A DNA stretch of 64,000 bases, taken from contig NW_002060945.1 in assembly GCF_000150275.1 (NCBI RefSeq), positions 8,076,011 through 8,140,010 of the forward strand, written 5' to 3'. This DNA comes from Trichoplax adhaerens. Lineage: Eukaryota > Animalia > Placozoa. The notes below the pieces were generated by a model. That model did no database searches, was not told where the DNA came from, and saw nothing but the letters and a program-made list of their open reading frames with translations. Positions 5,130 through 52,130 of this stretch are shown here, in pieces (position 1 is the stretch's first letter; each line of letters opens with the position of its first letter). A program made the position numbers and the translations under genes.

Positions 5130-5660
5130 TACAGTCCTGTATGGCACATTCTATAGTCTATACTATGCAAAATCATTGCAGGACTCTTTTAACAGCAAAA
5201 CCCCCTCGAGTACGGTTCGGTACGGTTCGGTACGGTACGTAGCTTTGACTTGCTCGTACTGCACACGTGCAGACAACGAGGTATACAGTACTGTACATTA
5301 AAATATCAATCTCCAAATCTTTCCAATTTTGGCTCGTGAACATCGAGATTTCTTGTATCTCTATGGGCTCTTTACTATTTTAGGATACATATCATGCTTA
5401 TTATTCCATGTATGTTACTTTAAAGCCAGGCATACACCAAAATTGCAAGTTTAATAGCAAGCAACTTTGCAAAATGATGTTTTGACCCAGTTGCGCTGGC
5501 AAGGGGGCAGTCAGCAAACAACCGCTACACTAGAGACCACACCATACACTACTGTACACTAGAGTTGATACGGCTGCATCATACAGTATAGTGCCATACT
5601 GTACTCTACAGTATGCTTGGTATGGATTGTACAGTACAGTGTACAGTACTGTGCACTGTA
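5130..5660. promoter_or_regulatory. Bidirectional promoter CDK12/YAE1 with TACAG/TACGG/CTGTA arrays
   Basis: Lies between divergent start codons (4951 and 5940). Arrays include tacggttcggtacggttcggtacggtacg (5211-5239), tatacagtactgtaca (~5282-5297) and tgtacagtacagtgtacagtactgtgcactgta (~5628-5660). Confidence 0.65.
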
Positions 5661-5939
5661 AGCAAGGGCAACACACAAAGATCTCGACTGCCCAAACATG
5701 GAATCGAGAAATGTCGATCAAAACTGCTACAATTAGCTGTTGATGTAACTTCAAAATTTGATGTAAGAATTCAGCTAATTGCCATCGATTACAAAGAGAA
5801 CACTATCCTCATTCGGCTGGAGAGAAAGTTAACTGCTATCATCACGAATTCGTTCGTTTTCCACCCTATTTGCGGCCCTTTTATCATCATTATCGAGGAA
5901 TGATACCTGCAGGTGTAAGCAATCACCTTCGTCGATGAG

Positions 5940-7313
5940 ATGGCTGAATCTTTGGAAGGCTCTCCTGCTGACGATGAGCTGCAAGTAGCAAACCGTGATT
6001 ATGAGAAACTACTAACTGCATATGAAAATGTAAGTATAGACAGTACACAATCGAATTCAATGATAATGTGCATACGGTGTGCTTTATTCGTAGTCTCCGA
6101 TTGGCACATTATTATTTCTGGCTATAGAATTATAGTTGGATTCGAGAAATCCGTAGTCTACTTGTCAGATGGATCAATATAGCTGCCAATGTTGATAGTG
6201 CTAGAGTATCGATCTTATTTCTAATGCAGTACGTATCAGCCGATAAATTATTCTTTTGCAATACTAAATAATCAGCAATAAGATACTGTCCTTTCAAGTC
6301 ATTGCATCCATGGTCTTCATAAAAATAAAAAATGATATTTCAATACTTGGATTTATAACTACTGTGCTATATATACTGCCACGATTTCATCAGGTAGGAT
6401 ACAGTGATGGTGTTGTCGCCGGTGAAGATAGTGCTTTACAGCATGGATTTAACCAGGGATTTGTCCAGGGATTTCGTCAAATGATGAAAATTACCAGAAT
6501 AAAAGGCATGATAAGGTAGATGTTACCTGCTTAAAAGGATATGCACAGGAAATACACATACAATACATAATTTAGTGAGCCATTGTCAACGATTAATTTT
6601 GATACCATTTGAAATACTACTGTACCGTTTCTTTCATATTAATTGCTGTATGTAGTTCTTGTAGTAAAAATTAAATTTTTTTAGCATCTCAGTGGTCTTG
6701 TATACAATTTATAGCTAGGCATAATAAGAAACCGTAGTGTTTCTTGCTATACTCACAGCAAACATTAATCAAAAGATTAAAAATGGATTCTTGGATCATT
6801 TTTATTAGTGCCTTGCAAGCTTACCAACAAAACGATGACGTTGGAATTAGACGTTCACCTGCCGGCATTTCGAACATGGAAATATTACTTACTCGAATAA
6901 CTGAACTAGAAACTACCACTATTCAAAATATTCAAAATATACCTAATGAATCCCGTCTTAAAGACAGTGGTAAAGATAATGAAAACACAAAAAGTAGCAG
7001 CAGCAACCAACTTGATAAATGCAATAAAACAAGTTGCTGTCGTGAATCCAATACGACAGCAGTAGATGATGATAATGATAACAATGATCGGAAAACCCAA
7101 TATAGTTGTGGGAAAGAAAGTGGTTATGTTTGTAACAACGATGAGAAGGCAATTACGAAGAAGTGTGATAATTTGGCAGATGAAAGTGTAGAAAATAATT
7201 TGTCCAATTTAAATGAGGTATTAACGACTATAGTCGGTGAATTAAAACAAGTGCTACAAGATTATGATATAAAAATATATAGCGCAATGGCGCAATTTCT
7301 AGATGTATCATAA
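5940..7313 (+). CDS. YAE1: YAE1 homolog (Yae1_N domain; ABCE1/Rli1 Fe-S maturation adaptor), 3 coding exons
   Basis: Exons are ~5940-6029, 6394-6515 and 6809-7313. The GX3-repeat motif VGYSDGVVAGEDSALQHGFNQGFVQGF is typical of Yae1_N. Confidence 0.8.
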
Positions 7314-7572
7314 ATACGTTATACACAATATCTTGTAAAGCATTTTATGGCTGAGTATTTCATGTTGAAATTGCATATGGGCGTATTATGCAGATTTTTT
7401 ATTAAATTATAGATAAAATAATTACGGTACATTCAATTTTACAACGAAATTTGTTGTTGATCATTTTCTTCTTTAAAGAATACATTTGTCTTGTAACGTT
7501 TTTGCAAATTTGGTGATGACTTTATATCATATTCAGCTGACAATATAAACAAAAACAAACCTGCGCTGAATT

Positions 7573-10341
7573 TTAACTTGTGTTTGGTATTTGAAATGCT
7601 GGAAATGCTGCATTGCTGATATTGAGCATGTCAGTTAAAAAGTAGATGGTTCCTGACAATCCTGTATATTTAAATCAATTTTTATTATCGAACGATATCT
7701 TCGTAAATAAAAAATCGTATTAATTAGCTATATTTGACAGATCTTTCAATTTTGTAGTGGAATGAGTAGTTACCTTCCATTAAAGATATTGGCCTATCAG
7801 CGGTTCTAGCGTGTCCACTTGACGAATCCATGCACCATTCAGCAAACTAAAGCATAGATAGAACTTCTTGTAAACTGCAATGGCAAAGTACGTACTGAGC
7901 GAGTATTCATTATATATTTTTAGCATCGTCTCCGATCTTACCTTGCAAGCCATGTATAAATAAGTTGGATCTGTCGTTGTCTTGTATATACACAAAAATG
8001 CGTATCCATTACCAGCCACTCCGTGGCATAAACCATATCCTTTGTAAAGTAATCCTCGTTGCCAGATAGCCCTAGCACAAGTTTTGGCCGCATCTAGATA
8101 TTTAATTTCGTTAAATACCTGTTGATAATAGACCAGCACATTTCTAGGTTAAAGCTTCTATGTTTAACACTTAATAACAACGAATCCACATTAAATGGTA
8201 CAGTCTTGATTGCAGCACCTTGTGTGCTTCACAAAGAAGGTAAACTATACCAGGCGCACCATGACACCAATGAACTAGGCGATCACGGCTATTACCGAGT
8301 GATGACGGAAAATTCCCTTCACGAAATTGTATGCTAAGGATAAAATCGATTCCACCTTTGATTACTGATAAATTTTCTTGTACAGCAGCGGATTTACTTT
8401 TGTCCTATAAAATTTGGGTCAAGTTGATATTACATATTTTATCAAGAGTTTTGCTACGTGATATTCGAAAATGCACTTGCAATGAATCTTCATTTATTTT
8501 TCTACCTTTAACAATAAGTATAGTATACCCGCGAGTCCATGAGCTGCACCAATATACTCTTTATCATGCCATTTATACATTAACGTTGAATGACAGCTAT
8601 TCACCTGAGCATAGTTCATGCCACTATTTATTACAATCTTGATCACCTATAATGCAGCCGTCGTCAACAGTAAATAATTAAAATGATAGCAGCAATGATG
8701 GATCGATAGCGTGAATGTTGACAAGAAGAGTTCATTAATACATAGTATATTTGATGCAAGAGAACCTCGTCAATAATCTGTTGTTCTTCACAGCTGAGGT
8801 GGTATTCAATAAATTTCATAGCATACACATATCCAATTCTTCCCGTCAATAACTCATCTGGTAAAGATTCATTTTGACATAAATTTGATAATCTTCGAAG
8901 TTGCTTCAGACATTCTGCCTTGCGATTTTTATCTCCCATACGATCGTAAATTACGCAAGCGATGGCTAGCAAACCGGCAACCCCAGACATAAAGCTGACT
9001 TGGTTTTTATCTTTTAAATGTTTAAAGGAAACTTGCAGCAAGTTTTCTGCTTTGCGTAAGTAATTCTGACTATAGCCATCTTGCATCATCTTTGATAATT
9101 GTAAATATGTTAATGCAATACCTAGATGAAATCATATTAGTTATCGTTATTTATTAATTTCAGATATTTAATGGCTTTTTGAAAGCGTAAAGAATATTAT
9201 CGATTTATTCAGTTTTTATTTGCAGATCCCTACGATAATGAATACGTGTACTATGTATCAGATTACTTTTGCAAAAGTATAAAGTAGATGATTTGGCTAC
9301 AGATCACATGAGTACATAATCTATAGATCGAATATCATTGTACAATTTGCTTGTACATACTCCTATACCAGTAAATTAGAGCACAATACTATCACCAGTT
9401 ATTAGGCTTAAAAATATCTACAGACTCTAAAATCTTTATAGCAGGTTTATAGTTGTATTGATGCTCTTCATCAGTACGTTGATTCATGTAATTTTCTTTA
9501 CAAAAACTGATGTATGCTACTGCTGAAATTGCACAAAATTCACGCTGATTTGTACAAATATTCTTAGTTTATGCAGTAATATAATGGACAACACATCGCA
9601 TGGAGTTTCACAATTTTTACCTCCGGATCCACCATAGACTGATCCGCTCAGGCGATGATGTTGCAAGCTGAGACCATCCTCCAACTTCCTGAGGTATGCG
9701 TAAATACTTTCCATTAACTTCTTCTTCCACTGATTGGTGCACTATAGTAGTAATTGGTAGAAAACGTTATGATACATTTTATAGTGTTTTATTTCATATA
9801 TGATAGTTTTCATTGCAGCAGCAGGAGAACCGAATGTATCCTCATTCGTTTATATCATGCTGTCTACTCAAACTTGGACGTCATAAGTATTTTTATGTCG
9901 TAGTATCCCATGCGGGTACATTAATTAGCCTCAGTCATTTTAAATAATGACTAGAGCTAACATGCATGTTTATCACTACTCTGCTACTTTATCTCGAAAC
10001 AATTTAGCATCCAAGAGAATGGTCAAGGTAAAATTATTGATGAAATTGTATCTAGAATTCGTGATTATGCTGACTACGATAACTTTCAAGTACAGTACTA
10101 TGCAATTATAGTAGTAAAGCTAATGCCTTTTTAACGTATAAGCTGAAAAGATCAATATTAGAATACGATAATGGATACGTATGATCATCAAGAAGAGAGA
10201 TTTGAAAAAGAGTAATAGCTGTTGGATAAAATGGCTCTATTGATAGCTATTTCTTACATTTCCCAGTTGATCATAAAATTCTTTTTCCATACCCGGTACA
10301 TAACTATCAAAATCGTTTTTAAAGTGTCTTCCATCATCCAT
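7573..10341 (-). CDS. LANCL: LanC-like protein (LanCL family), paralogue A, 8 coding exons
   Basis: Starts MDDGRHFKNDF. Motifs: SVYGGSGG, SFMSGVAG, LPDELLTGRIGY, YIGAAHGLAG, LVHWCHGAPG, GLLYKGYGLCHGVAGN, DRPISLMEGLSG, FPAFQ. The Zn ligands (Cys of WCHG, Cys and His of CHG) are intact. Confidence 0.93.
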
Positions 10342-14412: not shown

Positions 14413-14924
14413 CTACAGGACCTTTTATTTGCTTATTCTCTACTTTGCTATTAATTACTATAAATTATGAGATAGGCTACAATAACTATATCACCTTGTA
14501 CAGTATGTGTAAACATACCATTATTAGTCAATATACTGTACTATGCAATGCAAAAGTGTGCATCTTTCGTCGTAGAAGTTTACTTAACTAGCATTTCTTC
14601 CATCATGCATTTTAATCTGAAATTAAACTGTAAAATAGATGTGGAGATAGCATATTTTGACAATGGCAAATATTCTGCCTATTTGCATTGGCTAACTTCT
14701 TAAATTTCATTGAAATTTCATCAAGAGTCTTGTATTATGATATGCTTTCAATCTAGGTGCTTATAGTAAAATTACTATGAACAGCTGTAGAAAGATTTTA
14801 CCAGATGGGTCAATATATACCGATTCTACAATTCAACTCTTAGCATCCACCCTAGTCTTGAATATCAACACATAAATTACTTAGGTAATTGATACTCATT
14901 ACTTCATTACTATACGCCAATATT

Positions 14925-18006: not shown

Positions 18007-21000
18007 CTATTTTATGATTTTAAGTTCCAGTTCTACTAATTCTATCCGTCTCCTTAGCATTTCTATATCTACTTTAGTTGCCTTGGATTTTTCTAAATGA
18101 CGGAGCACATAATGTTTTAAAAATATCAGCAGGCCTTCTCTAAGGTCTGACAGGTGTGATAAATTTCCTACTCTGCCAAAAATTGACCTAGCAATGTAAA
18201 TAAATTAAACAAGCTATATGTCAAAGAGTTGATTTTAATACAAGCGTAGTAGTTTTAAAAATCAGCGCCTAATCAGGTTGCACAATTTTACCTGCAAGAC
18301 TTTTCCGATTTATCCAGTAATAATTGCAGCAATAAAGAGCGATAGAATTTGATAGAAGTTTCATTCAATTCGCCAAAATTGACAATCTACGATATAAAAT
18401 TAAACCCAGTAAGTTAACGACGTCTACAGCGTTGCCAATGCTAGATGTGGTATAAGTGCAATGTTAAGTTTAAAACTTAATTAAGCTCAAACATTGATAT
18501 AAAATTTTTCCATAGTTAACAAACCTTCAATGCAGAAAGCGATAACGAGTTGGATAAAAATAAATTAGCCAATAATTTAGAAAAGGTCAGGCGTTGAATT
18601 TTTGAAAGATCTTCCAGCCGCTTCAAGCGATCCCATATCGAATACTGGAACGTGATCTATATCAACGAGAGTAATTGTCTCACTATCACGGTTCGATATT
18701 CAAGAATATGGTTAAAATAATTGATTACTTCTTTACATTGTTAACGAACCTGGTAATTGCGTTTATATTCACAAAATTTCTGTCCTAGGTACGCGTAAAA
18801 TGGATTAAAAGATTTCTCCTACAGTGTAAGAACATCCCATTAGACTTGTAATACACCAATATAGAAATTACGTCATGCCCGAGCAAATCTTAACATACTT
18901 GCAAACAACAATCCAATAAAACATGAATTATGTCCCTTTCTTGTTTATTTTTCAGTTTCAATTTCAGTAAGTTCTCAAATGCGTTAACATAGTCCTATTA
19001 TAAATCGGCAATGCAATGTCAGTGAAAAGGAATACGTACACATATGCAATGTAAAATTGAACAATTAACATAGTTACATACCTGACTTGACATTATGATG
19101 CAAAAGATATTTCGTCTGATGTCAGTATTCATTCTTTGCTTCTTAGCTAGTTCTACTAATCGATTATCGCCAATACCACTACCTGAGAGTTCTTTATCTT
19201 GCCCTGTAATGTTGCAATGGACTTAAGAAAGAGTTCACAAATGAAAATTGTGCTAATACAATAAGCTGAATAGCTTACTTCCAAAAGTCTCTCTATCGGA
19301 CCACGATGAACCTATAACCCACCAGCGACCTTTTTACAAAGACAAGAAGTTATCAGAAGAGTTTTTGCATGTTAACATTGCATTACCTTAGTTAAGTAGT
19401 AATACATGTATTACCTGTTTTATTGCAAGCTAACAGATCTTTCAAAGAAATTTGCATTTGTGCATCACCTTGGCGCTCTATAATCATATCGCAAGGTACA
19501 TACGCATATAAAAGATAGTGATGTAATTCAGTACTGTATACAACTATAAATGTAATTATGCCTACATAAAAGAAATTTTACCTTTACTTAAACGCCTGCA
19601 TATAACCTTTAAATTTTCTAAAAGAGTTGGATCGAATAAAGCTAATTTCTTCGAATTATTATTGCAGACATACTTGAGCGTATCAAGCATAAAATTAATT
19701 CGCGATCTAAAGTTATTTATACACATAAAAAGAAATTCCTCGGTATAGAGTATAATTGTATCATCGAGTTTCATAACGATAAAATTGTATACTCAATTAT
19801 AGACTTACGCGTCATCTACTGTACAAACCAGACTGCCAGATTTAGAATGAATTTGACTAGCGATCTCCTAATGATTGATAAATGCTTATAATTTTGAACA
19901 AAAAATCAAAAGAACGAATTATCACATCATGCCATACCTTCAAGGCGGTGGGATCATCATTTCGAATTTGTAGCCCAACATCTTAAGTCATTTAATTAAC
20001 ATTGTATTCTTTTAGACTTTATCGATAATATTGAAGTATTCTTGATTTCGATGAAAGTTTTAAATCTGATCTATAAATCGAAAGACTAGTAAACTTACTC
20101 CGGAGGATATGCAATAGTAATTCCACGTCAAGTTGGTTCATACTTTCAATAGATTTTCGAATCAAATCGTATATTAAAGTGCAATGAATAACCTGCAAAG
20201 AGAAAGAACGCGACATCGTTCAATCTAACTCGCTTAGTAACTGAAGTCGTATAGACAATTTATTAGCAAATTCAATCATGATTGACTATTCTTCTTTCAC
20301 CTTAAAGTTATATAAATGGCAAAACAAAGATAATGCATTATGGCACCGCTTATTCGTACCAATAGGACCAATTTCATTGTATAAATTTTTGTAAAATAGA
20401 GCTAGTTTTTCTATAAAGTGAGCACCTATGCAAAGTGAGAAAATTTCGTTGAAAAAGTGCTACTTTACGCCTTGAATATACGCACATTAGTGAATTCTAA
20501 CCGATTTCAGTGCCAACGTTGGAGTGTAATACTGTGATAACAACAACATGCTCCATAATTAACTTTTCAGGAATCAGCGTATTTTGGATGCAGCTATCAA
20601 AAATCAGTTGAGTCAAGGTTTCTGTTACGCCTGTTCAATTATATATAACATATATGTAATTATTTACAATAGAATTGGAGAAAAGATTAGTCGTAACATA
20701 AAAGCTGCTTAAGATTGCTTGTAGTTGATTAAATTATTAACCGAATCTACTGTAGTTCCGATATAAATTTTCAATCTGATTAATGATAATCCCAATGTTA
20801 GACTCGCTCAATCTGGTAAAAGCAACAAGTTGATATAATTAGTACAATTAACCGCATGGAAAAATACTTAAAGTCTACATTGAAATGTAATATTTTCTGT
20901 AAATAATTAATTAAATTTGGTAGAATAACCTATTAATATAGCCCTTCATCTGTTTTCGAATAGCATCTATTTCTTTGGAATCATTCTCATTTCGCATTCT

Positions 21001-23766
21001 TTGTTGAGGAGGTATATATTTTTCTGTCTTAGTCGTGAGTAAATCCTTACGTAACTCATTACTTTCATTATTTACGGATTCCGTGTGGCTATCACCATCA
21101 TTGCTAGCGCATTCATCAGCTGTACTGTTAGATTTATTTTCTAGGTCAACTTCAGAGTCTTCCTCCAAACTTTCTTCGTCATTTATACAATCGCTGTTAT
21201 CACTGTCCAAATTCACATTTTCTCCTTCGCTACTCAAATCTTGGCTTACGAAATTATCTTCGTCTGCCTCGCTTAGTACTTCATCATCACTTTCACAAGA
21301 ATCATTATCATCGCTAGAATTGTCTGACTGACGTTTTAATATGCTCTTTGTCTTTTGCTTTTTCCGAGTAATAACCTTATCAACGTTAGTATTTGAATCA
21401 ATTCTATCGCATGCCTCAAGTAAATCTGAATTTCAAAGTTAAGGATTTATTACTGTAAATTTAAGCGTATACAATAGATCATCCATTAAACTTGATAGTA
21501 TCCTACTTTGCAATTAATTACCTCTACAAAATTTGAAGACAGTATCACTGGATATTGAAATCATTGTACACGTAGAATATACTTACTGTAGAATAATTAA
21601 TTAAAGTTATTTATCATCTGCTAAAATATTTTATTACGAAAGATTGGAGTTAATTTGGCAAGGTAGATACAGTCAAGCCCATCACTTCGAAAGGCTGATG
21701 GCAATGGATTTTTCTTATTAAGTTTTAATTTCCACTCTAATTTTGAAATTACTTTATCATCCACTTTATTAGCCATGGAGAGATTTATCTTTGAATTATT
21801 GAATGATTGATTATCCTGAATGAATTGAGTATTAAAGTCATCAAAGAAATTTAGATAGTAAACAAGGTAATATTATAGTGCTCGTTATGCCATACTATCG
21901 TATAAGTACAGTAAATTGATCATTTTATATAATATTATATTTGCATGGCGCATTCACAAAACAAGGTGTCTATCGATGACTTACTTCATCTTGAACCTGG
22001 TTCCTTTTCCTTTTTTTCTTTGAGCTAAGGGATTTTTTACGATTATCGGATGTAGGTTCTTGGCTACTCTTAGGATGTTTTGCTTCAGTGCTATTTGTGG
22101 TCATTTTCTGTCAAAGGGAGTATTTTATAATTTCCATTGAATGATGTAGTACTAGCTTATAACATAATCTATAGCATAATGGAATATTTTTAATTTTTTG
22201 CAACTTCTCCAGTATTATCAGCGTTATTACAGCGTGGATTATTCAGCTTATATAAGGATAACTGTACAAGTAATGGAAGTGCATTATAGATCTATTATTA
22301 ATACTGCAAATTAAAATAATTTATTGGAGAAAAGTGAGCACGACAGCAAGTTAAGCTTCCATACAGTATCTATTTATTAAGTAAAGACATGAAGCATTTT
22401 TGTAGGTGCTATGGAATCGATTGATACGCAAATTAAGAGAATAGCAAATGCTTGAGGTGAATTACTAGTACTTTATAGCCATTCAACTGAATAGACTAGC
22501 TTGATGTATATCATAGGCGAAGATGGAAGAGTGGCAGAGTTCATAATGAAAAATGGTAAAGCGTCTGCTATCATTGTATAATATTTATTATCAATATTTG
22601 AAAAGTATTTCTGAGTGGAGAATAACTAGCGCTAATTAACTAGATCGAGAGTGATAATAAAATTGCAAGTTACTTTTAGAGTTTACATACAGAATAATAT
22701 GCACGTCTGTTTTGTTTTTTAGCTAGTCTTGATTGCTTTCTTCTTTCTTTTCTAGAAATGGTTGATGAAACTGACTTTATGGCATCAAAGTCTTTTTCTA
22801 TTGAAGAGAAATAATATTAAGTTGAAATTTTGATTTATTGTGCAATAGGTTTGAAACATGTAAGCTCAATGTAATCTGTAATTTAAGCTATAGCAATCGC
22901 ATGTAGTTTTACTCAACGTATTCATACTCGTCAACTCTACTTAAAGGTAGTATGCAATTCAATCAAAATGTAGCTATAATCGACAAGAAAAAGTTCTTGG
23001 CTAAAACAAAGTTCATGCGTGATGAAGCTAGTTTCACTACCACTGCCTAGCTTGATTCCATTCTACCGCAAGCTACTGTTGAATTATTTTCGGATCGGAT
23101 TGACTATAGCTATTTCATCCAAGTACCCGCTACTATAGCACAGTAGTCGCTATCACACCCAAAATTGAAGCTTATATCCCCCCATTGAACAAAGCTCAGT
23201 AGACGGCTAGCACGGACTACAGGGCATCCATTCTCTTATTCAAGCAGTTGAAGCAGTCTCTGTAACTAGCTAGCATAAGTGATAATCTGCTATAACGATA
23301 CGATATCGTATTTTGTCATCTTTTACAATATTGGCATCATCCTACCGCAGCGTGATTGCAATGTGGGCATCGATGATTCTATCCTGTCAATTACGACAAT
23401 GCCTTACAACAGATCAAATATGAAAATCAATGAATGATGTATCAATGGTGGAGATGTTCACTGCTGTACAACTACTAGGCTGCCATTAGCAATACATGTA
23501 TCGATTACATCTGATGTGCTGTTGAATGGGTGCTGGCTGAAAGCTGAGCCAACAATGCAAATGCAATGAAGTATTTTGCAGACTGGATGACTGTCAAGGT
23601 ATGCAAAAGTAACATGCCTGACCATAGTAATTGAATTTTGCAATAGTAAATAGCAGTGATTGTCGATAATCTATCACCGTTTTATTGTTGTTATTTCCAC
23701 TACTTTATGCATGCAATTGTAAAGCCAGGCATTACCTTCTCCTCGAGCTGTTTTTGCCTTTCCCAT
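18007..23766 (-). CDS. NOM1: Nucleolar MIF4G domain-containing protein 1 (NOM1/Sgd1; MIF4G + MA3), many exons
   Basis: Motifs: SRKERRKQSRLAKKQRR, an acidic tract, KYIPPQQR, KGYINRLSESNI, GLQIRNDDPTALK, RINFMLDTL, GRWWVIGSSW, AKKQRMNTDIRRNIFCIIMSS, FNPFYAYL. The first exon MGKAKTARGE at 23766-23736 is less certain. Confidence 0.88.
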
Positions 23767-23819
23767 TGCTTCTCTTTCTTTCTGCCACCACTATTGAGCA
23801 GAGTCAAATCTCGGTCGTC

Positions 23820-24710: not shown

Positions 24711-24836
24711 ACCAGAGGATGGAATCCGATTGTCCGACTTGGCCATACAAATCCTTCAATTAAGGTGAAGACTTGCTTGAACGTCCATTTGTTGTAGAAG
24801 AAGCAAATAGTGGGGGGAAAAAGCCACCAATTCATC

Positions 24837-35061: not shown

Positions 35062-38000
35062 CTACTTTAAGGGAGAAATATCCTTCAAGGTAGTTACTTC
35101 GAAGCGAAAATTTGTTGGTATTGAGGATAATTTCAGCCGGTAAATAGCCTTGATGTCGTCAAGCTATAAAATATAATTTAAATTGATGAACACATTTAAT
35201 GAATGAGAGTATTTAATGTCAGTTAACAAGTATATGTATGGTATGTAAACTATTTAAAAATGAAAATCAACCTTGAGATATCGTAAACATTTACATATGC
35301 ATTGAAGTATCTATATACTAAACATGCAAATCGTCGCTCTAGTCAGATATAAGTTACTTTTAGACAATTATGACCTTTTCAGTCAAAACGCCAGTTTTTG
35401 ATTCGGCAGCTAAAATAAAACTTGATTCTCCTTTACCGGAGATGCTATGCCATAATTTACCAAGATCTGGTTGTTGGTTGGACTGCAATTTTTTAAAATC
35501 AACATAACAACCACTAACAATAGCTTTAACGTTATGTTTTATCATTGGTCGCTGATCTATATCCACAGCCTCTAGACTACTGAACGAAGTACTTCCTCGA
35601 AAGCAAAATGGAGAATTGGAATTGAACTCTTCGATATTTGACATGACTTCCTTGAAAGTATCGCTACTTTCACGTTGTGATGTCTTCATTTGCGCTGTAA
35701 AAGCTGATTAAAAGTCGATGAAATCTTAGATAATAAGTCTTTAAAACAATTATAATATATAATTGCATTATTCCGGTATTTATAATTATATCAAGGGATA
35801 TTGTTGAATTGGAATTAAAAATAAATGGTATTTATATATTACAGGCTACTAATAATTTAGCATACTCCTTTTAGATTGGCTTGATAGGAATGCAATCATA
35901 GAAGGCATCAATTTATCATTTGTAACAATCCCGTCGGCGACATGTGCAACATTTCTTTGTTGGATGGACATCGTATACCCTTTTAAAAATTTATTAAGTG
36001 ATGCGATGCCGAATAAATATCCAGTTTTGTTCAAGTTAGATGCATTGCCGTCGGTAAAATAGAGAGTAGCATGATGATGCTTGGAGTGCATTTTAAACGC
36101 GATAGATTTTTGTTGAACCTAGTGATAGATAATAGGATGATGCTTAAATACGATTTTAATGATTCCATTTTGTTAATTAATTCTAAATTGGTCCATTAGG
36201 CTACAAAAATCAGGCGGGAATATATCGTAAGTTAGCTAAAAACTGTCGCTAGCAGCTACAAACAACGAATAAGAGTTCTGATCGCAGTAGTAACATTTGA
36301 CGATTACCTGTTGGCAAATTTCATTATTTGATGGAGAATATTTAAGTAATTGAGTAGTAGTATTTGCCGTAATCATGTAGGTACTGCCCTGAGGAATAAA
36401 TAAAGTAGCTCCTGAATCTAATCGCGCTGCTTGGCCATTAATTTCAGCATAAATGTTGCCTTTTAGAATGTTAACCATGACTGAAAACCTATAAAAACGT
36501 TATAAGCATTTGTTACAACTTAAATGTAATCATTCGAACGTGATAAGCAAAGCACGCTATTTACCTCCTTTTGCTTAAAAAAAACAATTATAGATTAAAA
36601 AAAATCATCAATTTTAATATTTTAGACAAACATCAAAGATTGCATGATATTGATATCAATTTCACTCCATTTTGTCTATAAAAATCGACATAAGTAACTG
36701 ATGTTGTCGTATCATGTAGGTAAACGAGCGAAAGTACGATATACAATCAACTATATATTTACAGCACAATTAAAATAACGGTAATTAAGATTTGATATTA
36801 AATCAGAAATTATTATGATTTGGTTTAGAATAGCAAATTATTAATGCTGTTGCACGTCCCAGAAATATTGATCATGATACTGCGGGCTATATCGCAGATC
36901 GCAGGTACGATAAAGTTGATTGTAGTCATATAAAAATTCGCCAAACTTACTAGAATGAAGCACTGGTACTGAAACTAATGCAAACGTAGGTACGTAATTA
37001 GAGAAAATATTCAGTCAGCAGTTGTGTTACAAAGCAAATGAGGCTGGTAAAATGTAAAATTTTTAAGTTTAAAGGAATGAGGTAGAGGTGCTATTGATAA
37101 CGTGGGATGTTAGCAAATCGTGTAAGGACTGCCTACTAAAGTATAATTAGATAACTGTTGGCATTAAATCTGCGTTTGATAGTCTTTACTTTCGCAATAC
37201 TGCATAAAAATATAAACGAGATTGTTAGCTTGAAGTATACCCCACGAATATCTCCTGATATGTAGTTTAGATTGTCAGAAAAGAAATATAAATATCTTAA
37301 AAGGAAAAATTTTACGTTTATGATTATAGCTATAATTTAAGTGAGCAGAAACTACTAGTAATAAAACTTTCGGTAATTTCTGTAATATACCATATTGACT
37401 AAACTCACCAGTATAGCACAAAACATATTATCATATAATACGTAGGTCAATATTATACTTGTGTAAGAGGAAGACAAGTGTTCTAGCAAGACTATTACGA
37501 GAGTAACAAATCGTATCTTACCTTGTATTTTCACCGTATTCTCTTGCTTTAACAGCCATCGACTGATGAATAGACATTACATCTTCTTTACATAATATCT
37601 TCTGTTCAATTCCTTTCGATGGTTTTAGTTGGATATAATCTCGTTTTTTGTCTGGATAATATTCCTTCCTTGATACAGGATCAGCCGCTTTAGAATCGAC
37701 GCTTGATGCTTGATAAATTTGGATTACTGCACGAAGTGCCGACTGTATAGCTCCTTGAATCCAAAAATGGGTAAACGAAGTATGTTCACCGGCAAAGAAG
37801 CAGCGTCTTTCTCCTAAAAATTCAGTATACTATTTCATTAGCTAAAATGGCAGATTCAGTGCTTGCTTAGTTTCTACTTATTTGATAAATAGTAGACGGT
37901 ATCCAATTCATAAACTTCGTGCCAATTAGGTGAATTTTTGTAGATATACTCACGACTATAGCTGTTTCTGAATAACAGTTCACGTTGCTGAGGATAAAAG

Positions 38001-41000
38001 TAAGAAACCGCAGCTCCGGTATAAGGTTGGTTCTTCCATACTTGTGATGTTCCAGTTTCAAAAAGATCATAGGCTTGATCGCCATGCATTTTAGCTACAT
38101 ATTCTAGTGCGCGACGTAATCTACAATTTTCATCCAAAGATCCCCAACGATCTGCTTCTGCTTCCCAGGTGTATGCTGCTAAAAGTACCGCTATATACAT
38201 AATAAAATTCATACTGATTAGTCTCAGACTAGGATGATCGTTTAAAACGAAGTTTATTAAGAAAATGATGCATACTCTATGTATGTCATAAACTTCACTT
38301 TTTATGGATGTAGATGAAATGGTTTAACTCGGGAACATGCAAATAAGGGATTTCTGCAAGTTTGATTAAAATATTAATTTATAGAAGTTACTATTACAAA
38401 CCTCTTTGGTCATATTTTACACTTCCAGTCGGATAATAAATCGCTCGTAAAGGAAGATCTGTTGTTGAGCCACCTCCATTAATGATGCCGGTTTGATTGA
38501 ATTCAGCTGCAACCTAAATAGTAACATTAAAAATGATAGGTAAAGAGCTAAATCTTCATATTTCCTACGAACAACTTTATAAACGCTTAGGACCTAAATT
38601 TGCAAATGTATTATAAGAAACTGAGAAAGATTTGTAGAAACTAACCAAAGGATTTGGCTTAACCCAGAACGCTTTACGAAATTGTAGTAAAATTTTTGTT
38701 GCACTGATGTAATGAAACTCTCGGATAGATTGCCTTTTGGCCGGAGAAAATGGAGGATCAGTAAGAACATCTCGTAAGACGGTGAAGGGCAATGTAATCA
38801 AGACAAAATCGAAGGTGAGTTTCTTTTTATAGGAGTTTTGAACGGTATATTCGACGGTAGCTAGACTGTCTGATTGCTTAATGCTACGAACCAGTGCGCC
38901 AAATATTAAGTTGTCTTTTAAATCTAAATTTAATTAAGATATCACAGAGAGTGCTCCTTTAGTTAAAATTTGCAACCTACATAGAATTATTAAATTATAA
39001 TTGCCATTGTAAAATACCCTTATACGCGCACAAAGAAAGGACGATCGAGTGATAACTAAGTCATTTTATCCCATGACAGAATTACATACGGTAATTGATT
39101 AGTTATATTCATAAGTTCAGATAAACTGAACTTTATTTACAGCCTAAATTGAATCACTTAAGATTGAGACTCATTTGCATCAGCTAAATTATATGATTTA
39201 TAGTTTAGATTTCATAAGTTCTTGTAACCTAAAGTTTAACAGCCTAATTTGAAGAACTTAAAATTCAAATTCATCGGAATCAGCTAAATCAAAAACTTAT
39301 TGTCTAGATTACATAAGTTCATATAACCTGAACTTTAACTGTCTAATTTGAATTATTTAAAATTTAGACTTATTTATATCAGCTAAATTATATAATTTGT
39401 TGTTTAGATTACATGCATTCATATAACACAGTGGTGCAATATACTTTACCAATCGAGTAGTAGTTAGATAAAATTTAGGCTCGCTTAAGTTAGCTATCAA
39501 ATTTATCATATGGCTATGAATGCATAATGTTCAAACTTTTGCTATTATAGCATAATAAGCACCCCTATCTTTCTAATTCTTTTACCAATAGATTTTCAAT
39601 ATGTTAAATGAAAAAATACTTACGTTTATAGAATGCAGATGGTAGAGCATCAGTACCGTTCATTACTTGATGTAAGTGGCTTCTAGGTAATCCACGATAA
39701 AGATTGTCGGAATCATTCTTTGGATATGAATAATAGGCATTATCGCTCCAAAATTGCCCAACATAATCCTAATATCAATAGCATAATAAAGCTTAAAATT
39801 TAGAAAATTATTTCTATTAATTTTGAAATGATATAAACGCATTCATATCTCAAAATAGGTCAAACTGTAATGCACTGTAGATATTTTGTAGCAACAATGA
39901 TCACCAATCAATGGTCTAATTAGGTAGATGAAAACTCTCCCTCTGTAAATTTCTCACGTTTATACTTTCTTTTATATCGTATCATATATATTAAAAAGTG
40001 AACATTGGTTTATTGTTAAGGCACCTTAAAATACTCGATAAAACCAATATCCAAAAAGTTTTCTTGATTAATAACCACGGATAGGAAAGTAATATAATTT
40101 TTTGACCACATCAAGGATTCCAAAAATGTTCTGGTTGAGTATTGGTCATATTTCTGCATCATATGTTCCCATCCTATTTGCACATGTCAAAATGTGTTAA
40201 TTCGATTAATTATGATAGCAGTGAGTTAATGTTAGTAATCATCAATGTAAATCGTATATCTAGCATCAAGTGTGAATCAAACAACATTACCGCATAATTC
40301 TAATTCTTTGATTTGCGATTTCATCGCATCTTCAAATCGTTTAACAGGCCATATGCATTCTTTTGATTCGACGTTAAAATCAGCACATAGCTTCATGACA
40401 ACATCGTGCCGGTAATCTAAATATCCATTAAATAACGATGGATTGTTAGAAGGCTTCTGATCCTTGATGATATTATGTTAAAATATAGCATAATATAGTT
40501 ATTTCTGCTAAAGTTGTGTGTTCATCAAAGTAATTTGATTTATTGCACAATTGACTGTTTTCCAATAGTGGATTAGTCAAATGTTGCATGTAGTTCATAC
40601 TGTATAAATTGAATAAACGGCTTATACTTAACTAGTAATCACTTAATAAAGTATTGGGATGGGACTTCTTTAGAAGTTGTATTATATTTAATTAACCTAG
40701 AATTTGAATAGCTGTACTTTACGGTTTATTAAGGGCAAGGACAAACTCATGATGGACATACAAAATTTTGATACTATAGACGGAGCCAATTATACGTGCC
40801 ACAGGATACTTGTTGTCTACATTTTATACGCTTTCATTTCTTATGCTAATTTTTCTAGTTACCTTTGGTTTTCCAATTAAAAATCTTTTTTGGATAGGGC
40901 CTGCTTCTACCATCTTTACTGGTAAAGTAGTATAAAGATTCAGGTCCGGCTGTTGTAAAGCTGTTCCAACTCAAACCCATTTCTTGCAAATAAGCAAAAG

Positions 41001-44000
41001 TAAGGTAATGAGATGGAGGGAAACGCATTGGTCCTGCTTCGCCGTGTAAATGATCCTGATTGTGCATGGAAAGGATGTTTTAAAAAAATTTTATTTAAAA
41101 ATAAATTCTTCCTCTACTTATTCGGTAATTAATCGTACATACTATTAATAATAAATAGACTTGGTAAGATTTTTATAATAGTCGAAAGAGATTATGAGGT
41201 TACAAAACGAAATAACACATGAGAAAAGAAATGAAATGTGCCAAACATATTTCGAATTGAATTTGTTCCAAGAGATTCATTATATAGCAAAGCTTTCGAT
41301 AAGAGTTGCTACAATTTTTAATATTTTCTATTTTAAAGTGTTAAAATAATGATAGACTTACCGAGAAAATTTCACTTCGGAATGTTTTGGCTCTGCCTCC
41401 GATTCTTTGTGTGGCTTCTAGAATAGCTATGTCGTAGCCAAGGCGTTTTAATTCATATCCAGCAACCTACGGAATAATATGACAGGCAATGATCATACTA
41501 TCACAATTAGCAATATTTGAATACATATGAGTAGTTGTAATTATCTAATGTCAAGATTTAAGGAGATAACAGAATTTTAATATCAGCTAAGGTATTTCCA
41601 AGGCTAATTTGGCTTTTATTTTATTTATGCTCTATAGGTTAGGACTGAACACTTACCAAGCCCGACATACCAGCTCCAACGATTCCGATTCTGACTTTTC
41701 TTGTCACTTTCTTCATATTGCTTTTATTTCTGACAATTCTTAGTAGACATTCTCGAAATCGACTATCTTCGGTATGGGATTCCTTAACGAAGGTGTTGAA
41801 TTTCTTGGTAGAGCCTTTACATTGTTCTTTAGTGAACCTATTTATTGAGAAAGATATGGCTATAGTGCAAATGTAGTAACTGCTTAAAGATAATTAATTG
41901 GAGCTAAGGTATTGTCATATTTTTGCTTCTTTAGATTGCTTTGATACTTCCATGTTGTTATAATAATTATAAATGGTTTAGATATCGCTAATCATTTTAT
42001 ACTGTTCTTTAGAAGTTTAGAACTTATCGCAGAAATGAGTTGGAGCAAAGCAATATTTTAACGCCATTAGTCGTTGTATGCTACACCCTTACTGGTATTT
42101 ATCATAGCCTTCCCAATGCTTGCCAGGCGGAGAGTTTTCGACGTTATATAATACTGGTTCAGGTCCAGCAAGGTAATCTGCATCAACATTGCTGTAATAA
42201 TTTAAGATAGCACTACAGTTATAATCATTTCCACCATTACAGTACCTGCTAATTTATTTTTAATAGTGACGAAATTATTAAGTCCAATTTGCTTTGTATA
42301 AAATCTTTCAAAATTGTCAAATTATGAATATATTCAGTATCAACAATAAACTACAAATCGATATTACCAAGATTGAAATTTGATATTATTACATTAGAAA
42401 ACATGTGACGAGTTCAAAATGCCAAAGATAATTTTCAAAGATAGAAAGAGCTTTACTTACTCGAAATCGCATTGTTTTTGTTCTGAATTATTTTCCGCAG
42501 TAGCATAAACTGCAATCTGTAAGTAGAATATCTATCTTAGCCATTGACTCCATTATCCAATGTAAAGACTCCTTTCAATAGTAAGTAGAATTTGGCATAG
42601 ACCATGTTTATTCAAAATGAATAATCATTTGAGCTTGACTATTCGTTCTTTAAGGGTAGTTAATTCATCTTGTATGCCCCCCTCTACATTACTAAAAGAA
42701 AATCAAAACTAGAAGACTAACTCTATTATGATTACCGATATTCAAAGTAAAAGTAATACTGCAAAGATCTTGTTAATACACTAGCATAGGCCGAGCATGA
42801 TGAAAATATATAAATTGACGTGCTGTTATGGTTGTACCTATGTCCTGATCAACTCATTTCTCAAAAGAGCAAATGCTTACTACGTGCTTTTAGCTATTGC
42901 TTTAGCTAGCTTTTGCACAGCATTTGCGATAATTGTTGAAATAGCTACTGTAAAGTATAATGTATGGCACGTGCTTTGACATTTTAAGACGGCAGTCATT
43001 TTTTTAAAAAACCCAACTAGACACTTTTAAGGCCTCAGCTATCAATACCATGTTGCAAAATACAAGTAATGATCACATTTTTAGTCGATACCGTACGATT
43101 ATTGGCATAAAAGTCCTTGAACTGAAGCAATTGATCGTCTTAAATTAGTCCTTTTTAAATGTTCAATTCTTGTAACATTATAGATAAGTTCAAATATTGA
43201 GAGCCGTATATAAATGGTGAAATTAAGGTATCGGCCGTTTATATTACACTAGCCGTTACAGTATCTAGTTCCAATATTCAACAATCATATTATGGCCAAT
43301 CTTAAGGAATGTCCGGTCAATCCTAGATATTCCAAGGCAGTAACCATGTGTCTGTTCTAGACATTGCTATTTGCGTTGTCTTACAACGAACAGCACAAGA
43401 GGATTAATTTCGTAGAAAGAAAAAACATGTTTATTGTGAGATTAAAATTGAAATCTCGCGCGTAGATATAAATGTTGCCGTCAGTCCAAAGATTGACCTA
43501 CTATTCCTATGGAATTACTTGTACATTCCTTGGGATTGTTTAATTGTAAGAATTGACAAAAATAATTCAAATGTTCGCTGATCAAGATCAATATTTAAGG
43601 TTTAAATTACTGTAATATTTAATTAAATTAATCGCCTATTCTGTCGAAATACAAATGTTTTACACTATCGAGGTAAAGTACATTCGCTTTATAGTAGGCT
43701 AATTTTTAATGTCACTAGGACGAAAGGTCTACAATATCCTCTATTCATTTATTGACTTTTAATGGACAACACTAAACTTTAGAATAATTTACCTATCAAT
43801 TCATCGGTTAATACTCAAATTTATAGTATTTTAGAAATAGCAATAAACGCTCGATTTGCAGAAAGTAGGATAGACAGAAAACCCTTAGAGAAGCCTAAAA
43901 TCTTAGCAGAATAAACAGCTATTTCGGTACTACCTCGTAGTACCATAATTAGCTCTTTAATTAAGTTTCAAGGGATTTCATGTAAATTTGACTAAAATTG

Positions 44001-47484: not shown

Positions 47485-50400
47485 CTATCGTTTCTTATAT
47501 ACACATGGTTTCAATAAGGATAAATTAGCTACTTCAGTATTACTTTTCTTTAGCTGTTTTGATACTTCAACGAACTGGAAGCGGATAAACATTTTCGATA
47601 ATACAAGCTAGAATAGATATAAAACAAAATATGATAAATTTTTATAAATTGATACACTTCTTTGAATGCCATAGATTAAACAATACTGATTCGTATAACC
47701 TGTTCTACCCTAATAAAGATAGAATATATCGAACAGAATATACCTTCTCCTTTAATTTAAATCCAAACATCGATAAAGAACGAACGAATCTAGCTTCATG
47801 CTCAATCCTACTTAGAACTTCCGCAATTAGGAGGATTCCTCTATACGAAAGTGTAATTTTCGGTAAGGCATATAACAGTTAATTATGCTGACAGAAATGG
47901 TGTTTGATTAATTATCCATCTACCCTGGTTTAAGTATGCGCTTTGCTTCTTTAACATAATCTAGTAAATTGGTGCCCATAAGAGCCAAACAAAAGACGAC
48001 CATATCCACATGAGCATCCTCTAGCGGCGTCTTAAAAGTTGGCAAAAATTTAAAATTAGCATTTCTTATAGCATCTAAAGACGGTATCACCATACTGTTA
48101 TATTAGCTGCTGATTACACTGCTTTATCGTCTACTAGTAACTCTAAAGCCAATGAAAGGTAAATATCAACCAGATAGCACAGTTTTAGAAGTTATACTGT
48201 GCATATCGTATTACTGTAGATCGAAGTACTAATTTACTATACCGTGTGCATCATTTTAACTGTAGTCTACATACGTTTGCCATATCGCAAGCAATGATGT
48301 GGTCGGCGCGAGAAGCTAAGTCAATAGAATAGACTTTATTTGGAACTGACTGAGCCAAGCGACCTTCGCCACAACCTAAATCGGCAATAATTAAGTCTTT
48401 GGATCTAATAGAAGAGGTGGAGTTCAAAAGTATCAGGTTAAATTAAATACTTCCTTATGTATGAGCAGCAAATACTATATAAGATTATGTATAACCAGCC
48501 ACCCAAAAAAGCTCTCGGCCGGCGAATATATTCAGAGATTCTAAGTAAAGTAATATTAAAGCATATACAGTACGAGTATAATCTCCTAGGGATGTTAATT
48601 GTACGTGAGCATTTTAATACCATATAATAATTAAATCGGGCGTATAAAATATGCCGTGCTACCCAATATGCATCGTATCAACTTTCCATTTTAAATATCT
48701 TACTTTTAATTCCTAATATCGAAGTACGTATACGAGTATACAGTATTTTTGTTAATTTTAAGAATTTTCTTTTGAAAGTTACACACGTGCAAATAGATTA
48801 CACAAGTTGGTCATGGTTGCTTCTACTTCAACCACTGAATTTTAACGAAAGAATTTATTATTGTAGAAATGATTCAGTGCACGTAAGACTTGCACGCACT
48901 TTGGTATTAAATACATGCATGATGCTACCACAATCGTTCACTGGATCTTTCTTCAAACAAAGTAATTTGAGCAGAACTACCACCATGCATGAAAACAGTT
49001 ACTTGGATTTTATAGAAAAATTAGGCTACTAATGCACTTCCTCAAGCATTAAGTATTCGATTTATCTAGATTGTCTCTACAAATACCCGTCTCTTATAAA
49101 GGATTTATTTATTCATTCACTTTTTTTCAGGCCTATTTATTTTAGAGCAACTTTATGACGATATAAGATAAATCGAACATGGCTCAATATTATACCAATA
49201 CAAATGGTGTATTGTAGATATGCAGTAAAGTACATACTATAGAGTAAACGGCATGCATTCACTTCAAGCTTTTTAACCTAATAAACATTTCATATTGTAA
49301 TGTTGTATCATTGATTCGAAAGCACTATATCGAGAGCAACAGATTAGCTTATAAGTGTACTTGGGCTGGTCTTTTGACTTGGTGTGCAGAGGTCTGGCCC
49401 AAAGTGCATCTTCTTTTCTAACTGTCGGTAATTTCAAGCTAGTACAAGTAGTGAAAGTTATGTAGCTACTGATTTTGCATGCACTATACTAATGCAGTAA
49501 CAAATGCACCTACTCCTAAGCAAATTACCCATGATGTTCCAGCTAGGGTACGTTTATTCAGTTCATGGCATTACCTACGATGCTAATCTATTGCAATGTC
49601 AATCCTGAGCATGCTAGGCTACAGTATAGTGGTGTGCTTATCTCATGTCAAGGACTGGTACTAAAGGATAAATATCTTTTAGTAGGGGAAATTACAAAGT
49701 GTTGCAAATGTTTGGACTGGACTTTTGACTTGGTCTACAGAGGTCTGGCCCCAAAGTGCATCTTCTTTTCTAACTGTCGGTAATTTCAAGCTAGTACAAG
49801 TAGTGAAAGTTAAGTAGCTACTGATTTTGCATGCACTATACTAATGCAGTAATAAAATGCACCTGCTCCTAAGCAAATTACCCATGATGTTCCAGCTAGG
49901 GTACGTTTATTTTTAGTTCATGGCATTGCCTACGATGCTAATCTATTGCAATGTCAATCCTGAGCATGCTAGGATACAGTAAAGCGGTGTGCTCATCTTA
50001 TGTCAAGGACTGGTACTAAAGGATCAATATCTTTTAGTAGGGGAAATTACAAAAAGCAAATGTTTGGACAGAAGGTGAGCATAGTACCGTGCTGTATCAT
50101 ATTTCGATGAGATGCAGTCTTCATCATGCTCTAGTCAAAAGGGTATAGCAGTCAAAGATGCAGTCTTCATCATTCTCTACTCAAAAGGGTATAGCAGTCA
50201 AAGATGCAGTCTTCATCATGCTCTAGTCAAAAGGGTATAGCAGTCAAAGATGCAGTCTTCATCATGCTCTACTCAAAGGGTATGGCAGTCATCATCTCGG
50301 ATGGTAATGTCTATCTCACCTATTTCTGATGAAATCGATGATGTTATCCAACGGATTGATAGGCCATTTATCAACCTGAGTTTGGAATCCAGAATGATAA

Positions 50401-50858
50401 ATATCAAAGAGATTGGGATCACTTTTAAACATATGAAACGCTTCCAATCCTTTGATAGTATAGAGTTTCTCATTGACCCAGCGAAATCTTCCAGCTTGTA
50501 GTCTCTGAGCAAACTTATTATTTCCTTGTGTTTGGTATTGACCTGAGCCAACCTTGGTGTCTTTGCTGGTTGCTTGTACATTAGATAGACCTACACCATT
50601 TGCATGCAACTTGTCCATCTCCGATCGCTTACTGTTGTCTGACAATTTGACCTGAACTGGTGTGGACTTTAAGGGATCGGTATACAGTGGACAAGCCTTG
50701 ACCCTCTTTTCAACATTAGCAAGCATCTTCTTGTTCCTCTTATCCCTTATTCTCTTTCTGAAATGATTCCATTGCTTGCCTGTTAATTTCTTGAATAGTT
50801 GGAATTCTGCATAGGAATAGCGATTTTCATCACCCCGACGGTGATTTAAGGATAGCAT
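47485..50858 (-). CDS. RRP8: Ribosomal RNA-processing protein 8 / nucleomethylin (SAM methyltransferase), 5 coding exons
   Basis: [86 protein letters not shown], and the C-terminus LKPCVYKKR*. The start codon is uncertain. Confidence 0.94.
49361..50069. repeat. Head-to-tail tandem duplication, 2 x ~350 bp, in RRP8 intron 1
   Basis: cttttgacttgg...aaagtgcatcttcttttctaactgtcgg...agtaggggaaattacaaa occurs at ~49361-49711 and ~49712-50069, with scattered substitutions and small indels. Confidence 0.95.
50111..50291. repeat. Minisatellite, 4 x 46 bp, in RRP8 intron 1
   Basis: gatgcagtcttcatcatgctctagtcaaaagggtatagcagtcaaa starts at 50111, 50157, 50203 and 50249. Confidence 0.95.
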
Positions 50859-51019
50859 TGGCAATGGAGGGATTTGCAGACGATAGCGTTATTCGCTTCT
50901 TCTGCAGATTTCCTGTGCTCAATATCAAGGCAAATTTTGTACACAACCCGATCAGCTGGAAGAGAAATTCTCTTCTACTGTAAGTCGGTATAGTTGCTAT
51001 AGACATGTCGCGAAATTCA

Positions 51020-52130
51020 GGTACAGTACAGCGTACAGTACAGTACTGTACGCTCTACACGCCTAGTACTGTAGTGTACTGTACTGTACGTACAGTACAG
51101 TATACTGTAGTGTACAGTACTCGATCCAAATTGTACCGCCCCCCCTTTGGACAGGAGTGACAATGGTTATGCACGAAGTATCGTTTGGAATGGCGTCATC
51201 TCTGCCTCTTGACCCTTGACTGCAGTCAGTCAGCTACAGCACGTTTGATCTGCCAAGTGACGTGCCAGCGTTGCAAATCCTAATTGCAATGCAGTGCAGC
51301 CCAGTAGTATTTTGTGGATGGATTACTCAATGTAATAAGATGAATCAATCTCTGTGCCTTCGTTATGCTTGAAGTATAGTCCGATTTGAGTCAGGCTTAC
51401 ATCCAACTTCCAGAAGAACTGGACAATTTGGTTCTGCTGTACAGTGTACAAGTGTACAGTATACAGTAGTGTATACTGTATACACTCGTGTACTCGTCCG
51501 CCGCAAACGATGATCCATTTAGACTGCTATAATCCTATTTCTGGCGTACAGCCTACTGTAGCTAACTGAAGTTGAGTGATTGCGCAATACCTTATTACAG
51601 TCACAGTACTTTCCGTTATACGGTACTGTAGTGTACAGTGTACTGTACACTGCACAGTACTGTACTGTATGGTACTGTATGGTACTGTGTACAGTACAGT
51701 GACCACAGCGGCTCACCATTGAAGCCATCGCATTGCCATTGATGATTGGCTGAGTGTCTGCATTTCTCAGACAGTCGTGTCAATTCTCAGGGAAACGAAC
51801 CAACGCCACGACGTCCAACATAGGTGAATGACGCTTCCAAAGCGTCAAGGAAGTTGATTGCAACGCGTCCATTGAAATCAACGCAACTTCCAGAAGAACT
51901 TGGACAATTTGTTTATGCTGCACAAACGATGATCCATTTAGACTGCTATAATCCTATTTCTGGCGTACAGCCTACTGTAGTCAGCTGAAGTTGAATGATT
52001 GCGCAATACCTTGTTACAGTACAGTACTCTCCGTTATACAGTACTGTACACTGTACAGTGACCTAGACCTTGAGTGACCACAGCGGCTTACCATTGACGC
52101 CTTCGCATTGCCATTGATGATTGGCTGAGT
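51020..52130. promoter_or_regulatory. Bidirectional promoter RRP8/glycosyltransferase with palindromic TACAG/CTGTA arrays
   Basis: Lies between divergent starts at 50858 and 52426. Arrays occur at 51020-51122, 51436-51495, 51595-51700 and 52015-52060. Reverse CCAAT boxes (gatgattggctg) lie at ~51741 and ~52116. Confidence 0.65.

Follow-up and report, generated by a model that had tools for sequence, protein, structure and literature searches.

The DNA analysed here, called the window throughout, is a stretch of 64,000 nucleotides from the placozoan Trichoplax adhaerens (NCBI RefSeq assembly GCF_000150275.1, contig NW_002060945.1, positions 8,076,011 to 8,140,010 of the forward strand), and our subject is a family of short tandem arrays of the pentanucleotide ACAGT/ACTGT that fill three of its divergent promoters. 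Sequence comparison together with published work forms the evidence base of the whole analysis. We found that the arrays are built on a palindromic GTAC core repeated every 5 bp, that their dense form is confined in the window to these three promoters and that they grow and shrink in place. The genes of the window are listed below; exon open reading frames (ORFs) were searched singly, so that each identity stands on individual exons and not on a joined coding sequence.

ATG at 5023, minus strand: CDK12-like kinase, recognised from the kinase tail (C-terminus) and a 407-aa first-exon ORF ending at this ATG.
ATG at 5940, plus strand: YAE1, with a YAE1-type GX3G and the GYSDGVVAGEDSALQHGFNQGFVQGF motif in the next exon.
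7783-9089, minus strand, and 12824 onward, plus strand: two LanCL genes.
15529, plus strand: TACO1.
20022-20216, minus strand: weak MIF4G match, consistent with NOM1 (putative).
ATG at 24837, plus strand: Ral, main exon at 28260-28775.
37877-41067, minus strand: amine oxidase.
50319-50888, minus strand: RRP8 (Methyltransf_8).
52363-56420, plus strand: MGAT2-like glycosyltransferase.

The gene identities proposed in a preliminary description of the window mostly hold, being supported by domain or motif evidence for each exon ORF, with NOM1 identified only by the weak MIF4G match. An ORF at 5613-5903 was tried as YAE1 and rejected because it reads through an array, the real YAE1 start being the ATG at 5940. 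A further single-exon gene of about 443 aa (31962-33290, minus strand) has no array upstream and is annotated in Trichoplax sp. H2 (L032:8583-9914); no Pfam match was found for it, and a protein atlas search with its 454-aa ORF (31962-33323) gave no usable match. The arrays and the boxes next to them are arranged as follows, with matches counted as 7-mers of the repeat.

5129-5147: short GTACAG..CTGTA copy about 106 bp upstream of the CDK12-like ATG (5023, minus strand); arm of the inverted pair I1.
5210-5240: ACGG-type tract, three copies of GTACGGTTCG, a CpG-containing variant of the GTACN unit with a 10-bp period; the sole such tract in the window.
5284-5296: short palindromic copy ACAGTACTGTACA.
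5550-5652: array with 17 matches, ending 288 bp upstream of the YAE1 ATG (5940, plus strand).
23825-24091: array with 27 matches, starting 59 bp upstream of the putative NOM1 ATG (23766-23764, minus strand).
23912-24027 and 24030-24147: tandem duplication with a period of 118-120 bp, in the NOM1-side array.
24288-24350: small central cluster with 6 matches.
24487-24653: array with 26 matches, ending 184 bp upstream of the Ral ATG (24837, plus strand).
24701-24705, plus strand: ATTGG (reverse CCAAT) in the context GTGATTGGTGA, 48 bp past the array and 132 bp before the Ral ATG.
50976-51120: densest array, 39 matches, about 90 bp beyond the 5' end of the first coding ORF of RRP8 (50319-50888, minus strand).
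51439-51700: array with 31 matches, including one ACGG-type unit at 51619.
51504-52263, plus strand: tandem duplication of an array plus CCAAT promoter module, in which 51504-51601 and 51698-51888 are repeated at 51923-52020 and 52073-52263.
51745-51749, plus strand: ATTGG in the context GATGATTGGCTGAG, 45 bp past the array.
51973-52059: array with 15 matches, the duplicated copy, about 300 bp upstream of the first coding ORF of the MGAT2-like gene (52363-53031, plus strand).
52120-52124, plus strand: duplicate ATTGG box, 61 bp past the array.

Array density was measured as the number of perfect (ACAGT)n/(ACTGT)n 7-mers. The window contains 302 such 7-mers compared to 43.8 +/- 8.2 expected, and GTACAGTAC occurs 25 times where dinucleotide-preserving shuffles give 0.26 copies. 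Dense arrays had been described beforehand at three divergent promoters and nowhere else (5130-5660, 23820-24660 and 51020-52060), and the counts bear this out. These three intervals cover 3.8% of the window and hold 165 of the 302 7-mers (55%), so that the density within them is 41-81 per kb against 2.2 per kb in the rest of the window, a 14.5-fold enrichment. The count of 165 was not reached by a single one of 20,000 random triples of intervals of the same lengths, and all 25 of the densest 200-bp segments overlap or abut the three intervals. Outside them isolated copies of two to three units are present, again as first described (e.g. 1167-1178, 10089-10098, 14498-14542 and 27938-27951), and arrays are absent at the specialised neighbours in the window, namely the amine oxidase, the orphan 443-aa gene, LanCL and TACO1. 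Perfect tracts of at least 10 nt number 17 in the window, the longest being 18 nt.

Measured from the start codons, the arrays cluster 60-370 bp upstream, and the genes in question are broadly needed ones arranged head to head. The original claim of one cluster near each of the two gene starts is generally right, with the CDK12 side of the first interval being weak, as it consists of two short copies (5129-5147 and 5284-5296) and the different tract of three GTACGGTTCG units; likewise the array of the third interval is present but starts at 50976 and not at 51020. A reverse CCAAT box following the array was confirmed three times, with ATTGG lying 45-61 bp past the array ends (24701, 51745 and 52120) in the NF-Y-like context TGATTGG. 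The locally higher GC content was also found, the three intervals having 0.414, 0.453 and 0.446 compared to 0.336 window-wide. The comparison of these promoters to CpG islands holds as a functional analogy only, as the CpG observed/expected ratios of the three intergenic regions are 0.73, 0.40 and 0.82 at a GC content of 0.42-0.46, below the 0.92 of the window, and thus the array spacers do not show the signature of such islands (a ratio above 0.6 and above background with high GC). Beside the arrays we observed a perfect, purine-rich 14-nt inverted repeat (ATTGCTTCTCTTTC / GAAAGAGAAGCAAT) at 23765-23778 and 24848-24861 with its arms 1,069 nt apart, one of them overlapping the putative NOM1 start codon (23764-23766) and the other lying in the Ral coding sequence 11 nt past the ATG, which may be due to chance.

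The element as such is known. Wang 2010 described ACAGT as the dominant microsatellite of T. adhaerens, accounting for 78% of the pentanucleotide repeats, with 54% of the copies no more than 1 kb, and 85% no more than 5 kb, upstream of a gene, enriched at translation, protein-modification and kinase genes, and proposed it as a possible transcription-factor site (Biol Direct 5:18; PMC2871265). The arrays of the window are that element, as genome, unit and position are identical: tracts of the kind counted there (tandem ACAGT/ACTGT, perfect over more than 12 bp) are present, and they lie within about 1 kb upstream of NOM1, Ral, YAE1, RRP8 and the MGAT2-like gene. That survey counted only perfect tracts longer than 12 bp, and it did not include the palindromic GTAC core, the mixing of A and T at the spacer, the pairing of clusters at divergent promoters, the variants of ACGG type or the lineage-to-lineage turnover that are described here.

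The distance from one GTAC to the next peaks sharply at 5 bp, with 26 pairs in the window and 59 in a 204-kb sample consisting of the window and 140 kb beyond it, and a minor peak is found at 7 bp. In the 5-bp pairs of the 204-kb sample the spacer base is A in 27 cases, T in 29 and G in 3. The repeat unit is best written as (GTACW)n, a palindromic GTAC core per 5 bp with A or T (W), occasionally G or C, as spacer. The arrays had been called self-complementary and strand-switching; the former is true of the GTAC core, while the switching is merely A<->T variation at the spacer that looks like a change of strand because GTAC is its own reverse complement.

Genome-wide counts were made in an assembly of 105,631,681 bp in 1414 contigs. 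The pure-unit 16-mer has 4,154 matches compared to 3 for a control, and GTACWGTACWGTACWG has 11,108 forward and 11,203 reverse matches compared to 3 and 2 for controls. With 2,021 forward matches of the pure A form, and the pure T forms assumed to be about as many as the reverse-strand matches of the pure-A 16-mer, about 63% of the three-unit stretches mix A and T and about 37% are homogeneous, where 25% would be expected under independent choice of A or T and about 100% for a pure microsatellite. The longest perfect tract in 204 kb measures 19 nt and most chains consist of two or three GTAC in register, so that the long homogeneous tracts of one unit that are typical of a classical slippage microsatellite are missing. 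Each array groups short tracts with degenerate units and in this resembles a homotypic site cluster more than a classical microsatellite, and a cluster of words fits better than a pure slippage tract because of the roughly 63% of mixed triples. Slippage nevertheless clearly contributes, since neighbouring units are alike more often than independent A/T choice would give.

Many unplaced contigs of about 1 kb (C26, C100, C103, C112, C200 and others) are packed with arrays, which suggests that the repeat hampered the assembly and that the genome-wide array counts are lower bounds. Outside the window one array-at-promoter site of the 204-kb sample was confirmed by Pfam, with GTACW arrays (block coordinates 79185-80106) between two divergent galactosyltransferase genes. 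These are 338-aa single-exon paralogs arranged head to head (L040:7356-8369, minus strand, and L041:1300-2313, plus strand; C1414, about 2.077-2.082 Mb), and a third paralog is located 3 kb downstream of the pair. A promoter test that made no use of annotation and relied on the strand of the nearest ORFs of at least 90 aa in the 204 kb was discarded as too noisy, owing to spurious ORFs of which some read through arrays. A search for over-represented 8-mers in the same 204 kb (window, C1414:2.0-2.1 Mb and C1413:5.00-5.04 Mb; L033-L046) listed the palindromic TACGCGTA (14 copies, 2.0 expected) and the related ACGCGTAT (21 copies, 3.2 expected) among the top words; their copies are single, dispersed and away from the arrays.

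In order to follow the arrays between lineages (T. adhaerens being H1) we used one promoter, that of NOM1 and Ral. The closest relative of the Ral exon, and the sole close relative returned by that search, is Ral-a of Trichoplax sp. H2, and positions 23385-38774 of the window align with the H2 contig NOWV01000133.1 at 98.6% identity. The NOM1-Ral spacer of 1,070 bp makes up 7% of this alignment and carries 42 of the 143 differences and 12 of the 24 indels, corresponding to a divergence of about 3.9% in the spacer versus 0.7% elsewhere. Whole units have been gained and lost in the arrays: compared to H1, H2 has additional GTACA, TACAG (twice) and ATACA units and a 10-bp loss of TCTACAGTAC. Indels of unit length between close lineages, as known from classical slippage microsatellites, thus do occur, along with A<->T flips at the spacer and point changes that make or break GTAC words (GTAAAGCA versus GTACAGTA, GTGCACAG versus GTGTACAG). 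The array content differs by about 25% (59 matches with 27 GTAC in H1, 73 matches with 34 GTAC in H2), and the arrays occupy the same places in both. Larger steps can be seen as well, since the duplicated module upstream of the MGAT2-like gene is about 375-420 bp long, 95-97% identical and found nowhere else in the genome, and local direct duplications are present at 11 of 23 array sites and in 20 of 149 control segments, a comparison confounded by segment length and the choice of loci. We have thereby shown that the arrays gain and lose length in place, through slippage of whole units and through tandem duplication of local sequence, and that they persist at the same promoter in the sister lineage.

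All of this (the 5-bp and 10-bp indels, the fast spacer divergence, the difference in content, the alikeness of neighbouring units and the excess of direct duplications) would also be expected if the arrays were a functionless by-product, i.e. a slippage-prone pentanucleotide microsatellite that seeds and expands in the open, transcribed and nucleosome-free DNA of promoters. We consider this explanation unlikely, as it does not account for the dominance of one single pentamer among the pentanucleotide repeats, and the perfect tracts are short (at most 19 nt in 204 kb) and mixed in A and T, unlike a repeat homogenised by slippage. In addition, the specialised genes of the window have promoters too yet carry no arrays, and an independent model trained on Micro-C data assigns the motif an effect (PMC12817080).

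This model belongs to the more recent work that connects such repeats to genome architecture. Kim 2025 showed that about one third of the placozoan genes (GP1, housekeeping) are found in promoter hubs, and that the loop anchors carry a motif found in the terminal inverted repeats (TIRs) of Mutator transposons; transposable elements (TEs) were annotated with EDTA, and Mutator annotations were enriched at GP1 promoters (Nature 642:1097; PMC12221973). The Chimaera paper (NAR 2026, gkaf1516) reported a network trained on Micro-C data of T. adhaerens that recovered a repeating ACAGT de novo, and named the transposon-linked, insulation-associated motif of Kim et al. as an ACGG repeat, listing ACAGT separately (PMC12817080). 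The early idea of a lineage-specific promoter-class signature with a role in 3D organisation is therefore right in outline and already published.

As the preliminary description had further suggested that the array could be the Mutator-derived motif, the relation between ACGG and ACAGT needs to be considered. Units of the (GTACG)n type are about 80 times rarer than (GTACA)n (53 versus 4,154 16-mers genome-wide), and the tetramer (ACGG)4 has no match in the genome, so that in this assembly the 'repeating ACGG' of the literature does not take the form of a tetranucleotide array. The tract at 5210-5240, from which the 16-mer GTACGGTTCGGTACGG has 6 matches in the whole genome, may be the kind of ACGG motif that others have linked to a transposon. 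All nine sampled ACGG-type loci lie in ACAGT-rich DNA, often within the same run (e.g. ...GTACAGTACAGTACGGTACGGTACGGTATGGTACAGTACAG...), and ACGG-type 7-mers (GTACG/GTACC) are 4-fold enriched in dense ACAGT zones, where 17 of 102 fall into 4.7% of the 204 kb (p = 6e-6). The two published motifs thus look like variants of one (GTACN)n array system.

It is this co-residence, together with the Mutator enrichment at GP1 promoters and the many inverted pairs of 20-45 nt, 300-1000 nt apart, that the arrays form, which would speak for arrays being TIRs or remnants of Mutator-type DNA transposons inserted or domesticated at housekeeping promoters. We nevertheless regard such an origin as very improbable. 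In the whole genome the array flanks (51700-51960 and 23900-24230) have no matches other than themselves and tandem copies nearby, and when the arrays were masked no homology was found among 25 array-bearing sites (47 kb), whose internal repeats were direct in 47 of 47 cases and never inverted. The MULE transposase domain (Pfam PF10551) has 4 matches in the 105 Mb, and inverted-repeat searches around two of them, over 10 kb and 6.4 kb, gave no TIRs of the GTAC or ACGG type; similarly, only 6 MuDR fragments and a TE content of 0.13% were reported in 2010 (PMC2871265). A motif residing in the TIR of a Mutator-family transposon is therefore not what the window shows, the differences between H1 and H2 being unit changes in place. 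What remains of the suggested Mutator link is the presence of ACGG-type units inside these arrays. Paired inverted arrays could be mistaken for terminal inverted repeats by a structure-based TIR finder, and one may speculate, though we find it rather doubtful, that inverted (GTACN)n arrays grown in place, with common A/T and rare ACGG units, are the sequence basis of GP1 promoters and loop anchors with no domesticated transposon involved, the 'Mutator TIR' link being an EDTA reading of inverted array pairs. A Mutator-derived transcription factor was also considered as reader of the arrays and rejected, as no FHY3-type gene is reported in Trichoplax (PMC10027918).

We think it somewhat probable that the (GTACW)n arrays serve a GTAC-reading placozoan DNA-binding factor as a multivalent landing platform, at constitutive promoters and together with NF-Y at the CCAAT box, and that they help in insulation and hub contacts. 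In such a model a putative placozoan factor would read GTAC-centred words in the array, and as successive sites lie 5 bp apart on roughly opposite faces of the helix, many copies could bind. Array and adjacent NF-Y-type CCAAT box would then keep constitutive promoters open, and the arrays may have a part in the insulation and in the contacts of promoter hubs that Micro-C reveals. Several points weigh against the landing platform. No binding protein for the arrays is known or was found, nor do we know of an animal DNA-binding family whose core is GTAC. Outside the window, the evidence that arrays accompany gene starts comes from Wang 2010 and a handful of sites in the sample. The letter-by-letter sequence of the arrays is not conserved between the two lineages, the spacer changes about 5 times as fast as the DNA around it, a pattern also expected of a neutral by-product, and neighbouring units are alike beyond independent choice (AA plus TT in 11 of 13 cases locally, besides the 37% versus 25% of homogeneous triples).

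A function could also reside in the DNA itself without any protein, by extrusion of cruciforms or hairpins under transcription-driven supercoiling, by nucleosome exclusion, or by a bidirectional, initiator-like field of CA/TA steps giving dispersed transcription starts. Folding energies of single array strands are -20 to -30 kcal/mol per about 100 nt compared to -5 for control DNA, and three of five arrays reach folding z-scores of -4.2, -3.3 and -2.5, but the other two fold no better than shuffles (z -1.3 and -1.2). CAGT is the initiator core and is found on both strands of every unit; however, at the five or six gene starts examined the orientation of the units shows no consistent relation to gene direction, and in our own comparison the units match the extended initiator consensus poorly. 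ACAGT is also the commonest pentamer in expressed sequence tags, so that some arrays are transcribed (PMC2871265). Altogether we judge a protein-independent element to be quite unlikely.

Compared to known systems, the landing platform has its nearest functional counterparts in Drosophila, where DRE TATCGATA (bound by DREF), the CGATA clusters of BEAF-32 and Motif 1 of M1BP are short, partly palindromic words that form clusters at divergent housekeeping promoters, which at the same time serve as domain boundaries. They are alike in role only, as their sequences are different, they lack a tandem phasing of 5 bp and their binding proteins are known. In T. adhaerens the motif of M1BP is reported to score through a shared 4-nt pattern (PMC12817080). 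Vertebrate CpG islands resemble the arrays as a compositional mark of constitutive, often bidirectional promoters with raised GC content and differ in that the array signal is a specific repeated word and not CpG density. With the GP1 motif of Kim 2025 the arrays share the promoter-proximal position, the restriction to placozoans and the association with housekeeping genes, the array-flanking genes being of the functional type that forms hubs in that study. They appear to differ in the motif, named as repeating ACGG and distinct from ACAGT by the later paper (a secondary source, through which our comparison was made), and no Mutator structure was found at the window arrays. ACGG-type units are present but rare, with one tract in the window. 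The ACAGT of Chimaera is the identical pentamer tied computationally to chromatin contacts, although as a network-derived motif without locus-level anatomy or a binding factor.

In summary, the element, its promoter position and the link to 3D contacts are already in the literature (2010, and for the 3D link 2026), and the new points are modest: the (GTACW)n formulation, the co-residence of ACGG and ACAGT, the single-copy flanks and the unit turnover between H1 and H2. Placozoans have no CTCF-type loops, yet about one third of their genes are found in promoter hubs, and it is the DNA word and the protein behind these hubs that are at issue. The window shows such promoters at base resolution, with paired, 5-bp-phased palindromic GTAC arrays beside a CCAAT box. 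These arrays turn over where they stand instead of being brought in by a mobile element. This gives a defined contrast between (GTACW)n and (GTACS)n, a separation of the ACAGT and ACGG motifs of the two papers, and a check on the story of transposon domestication.

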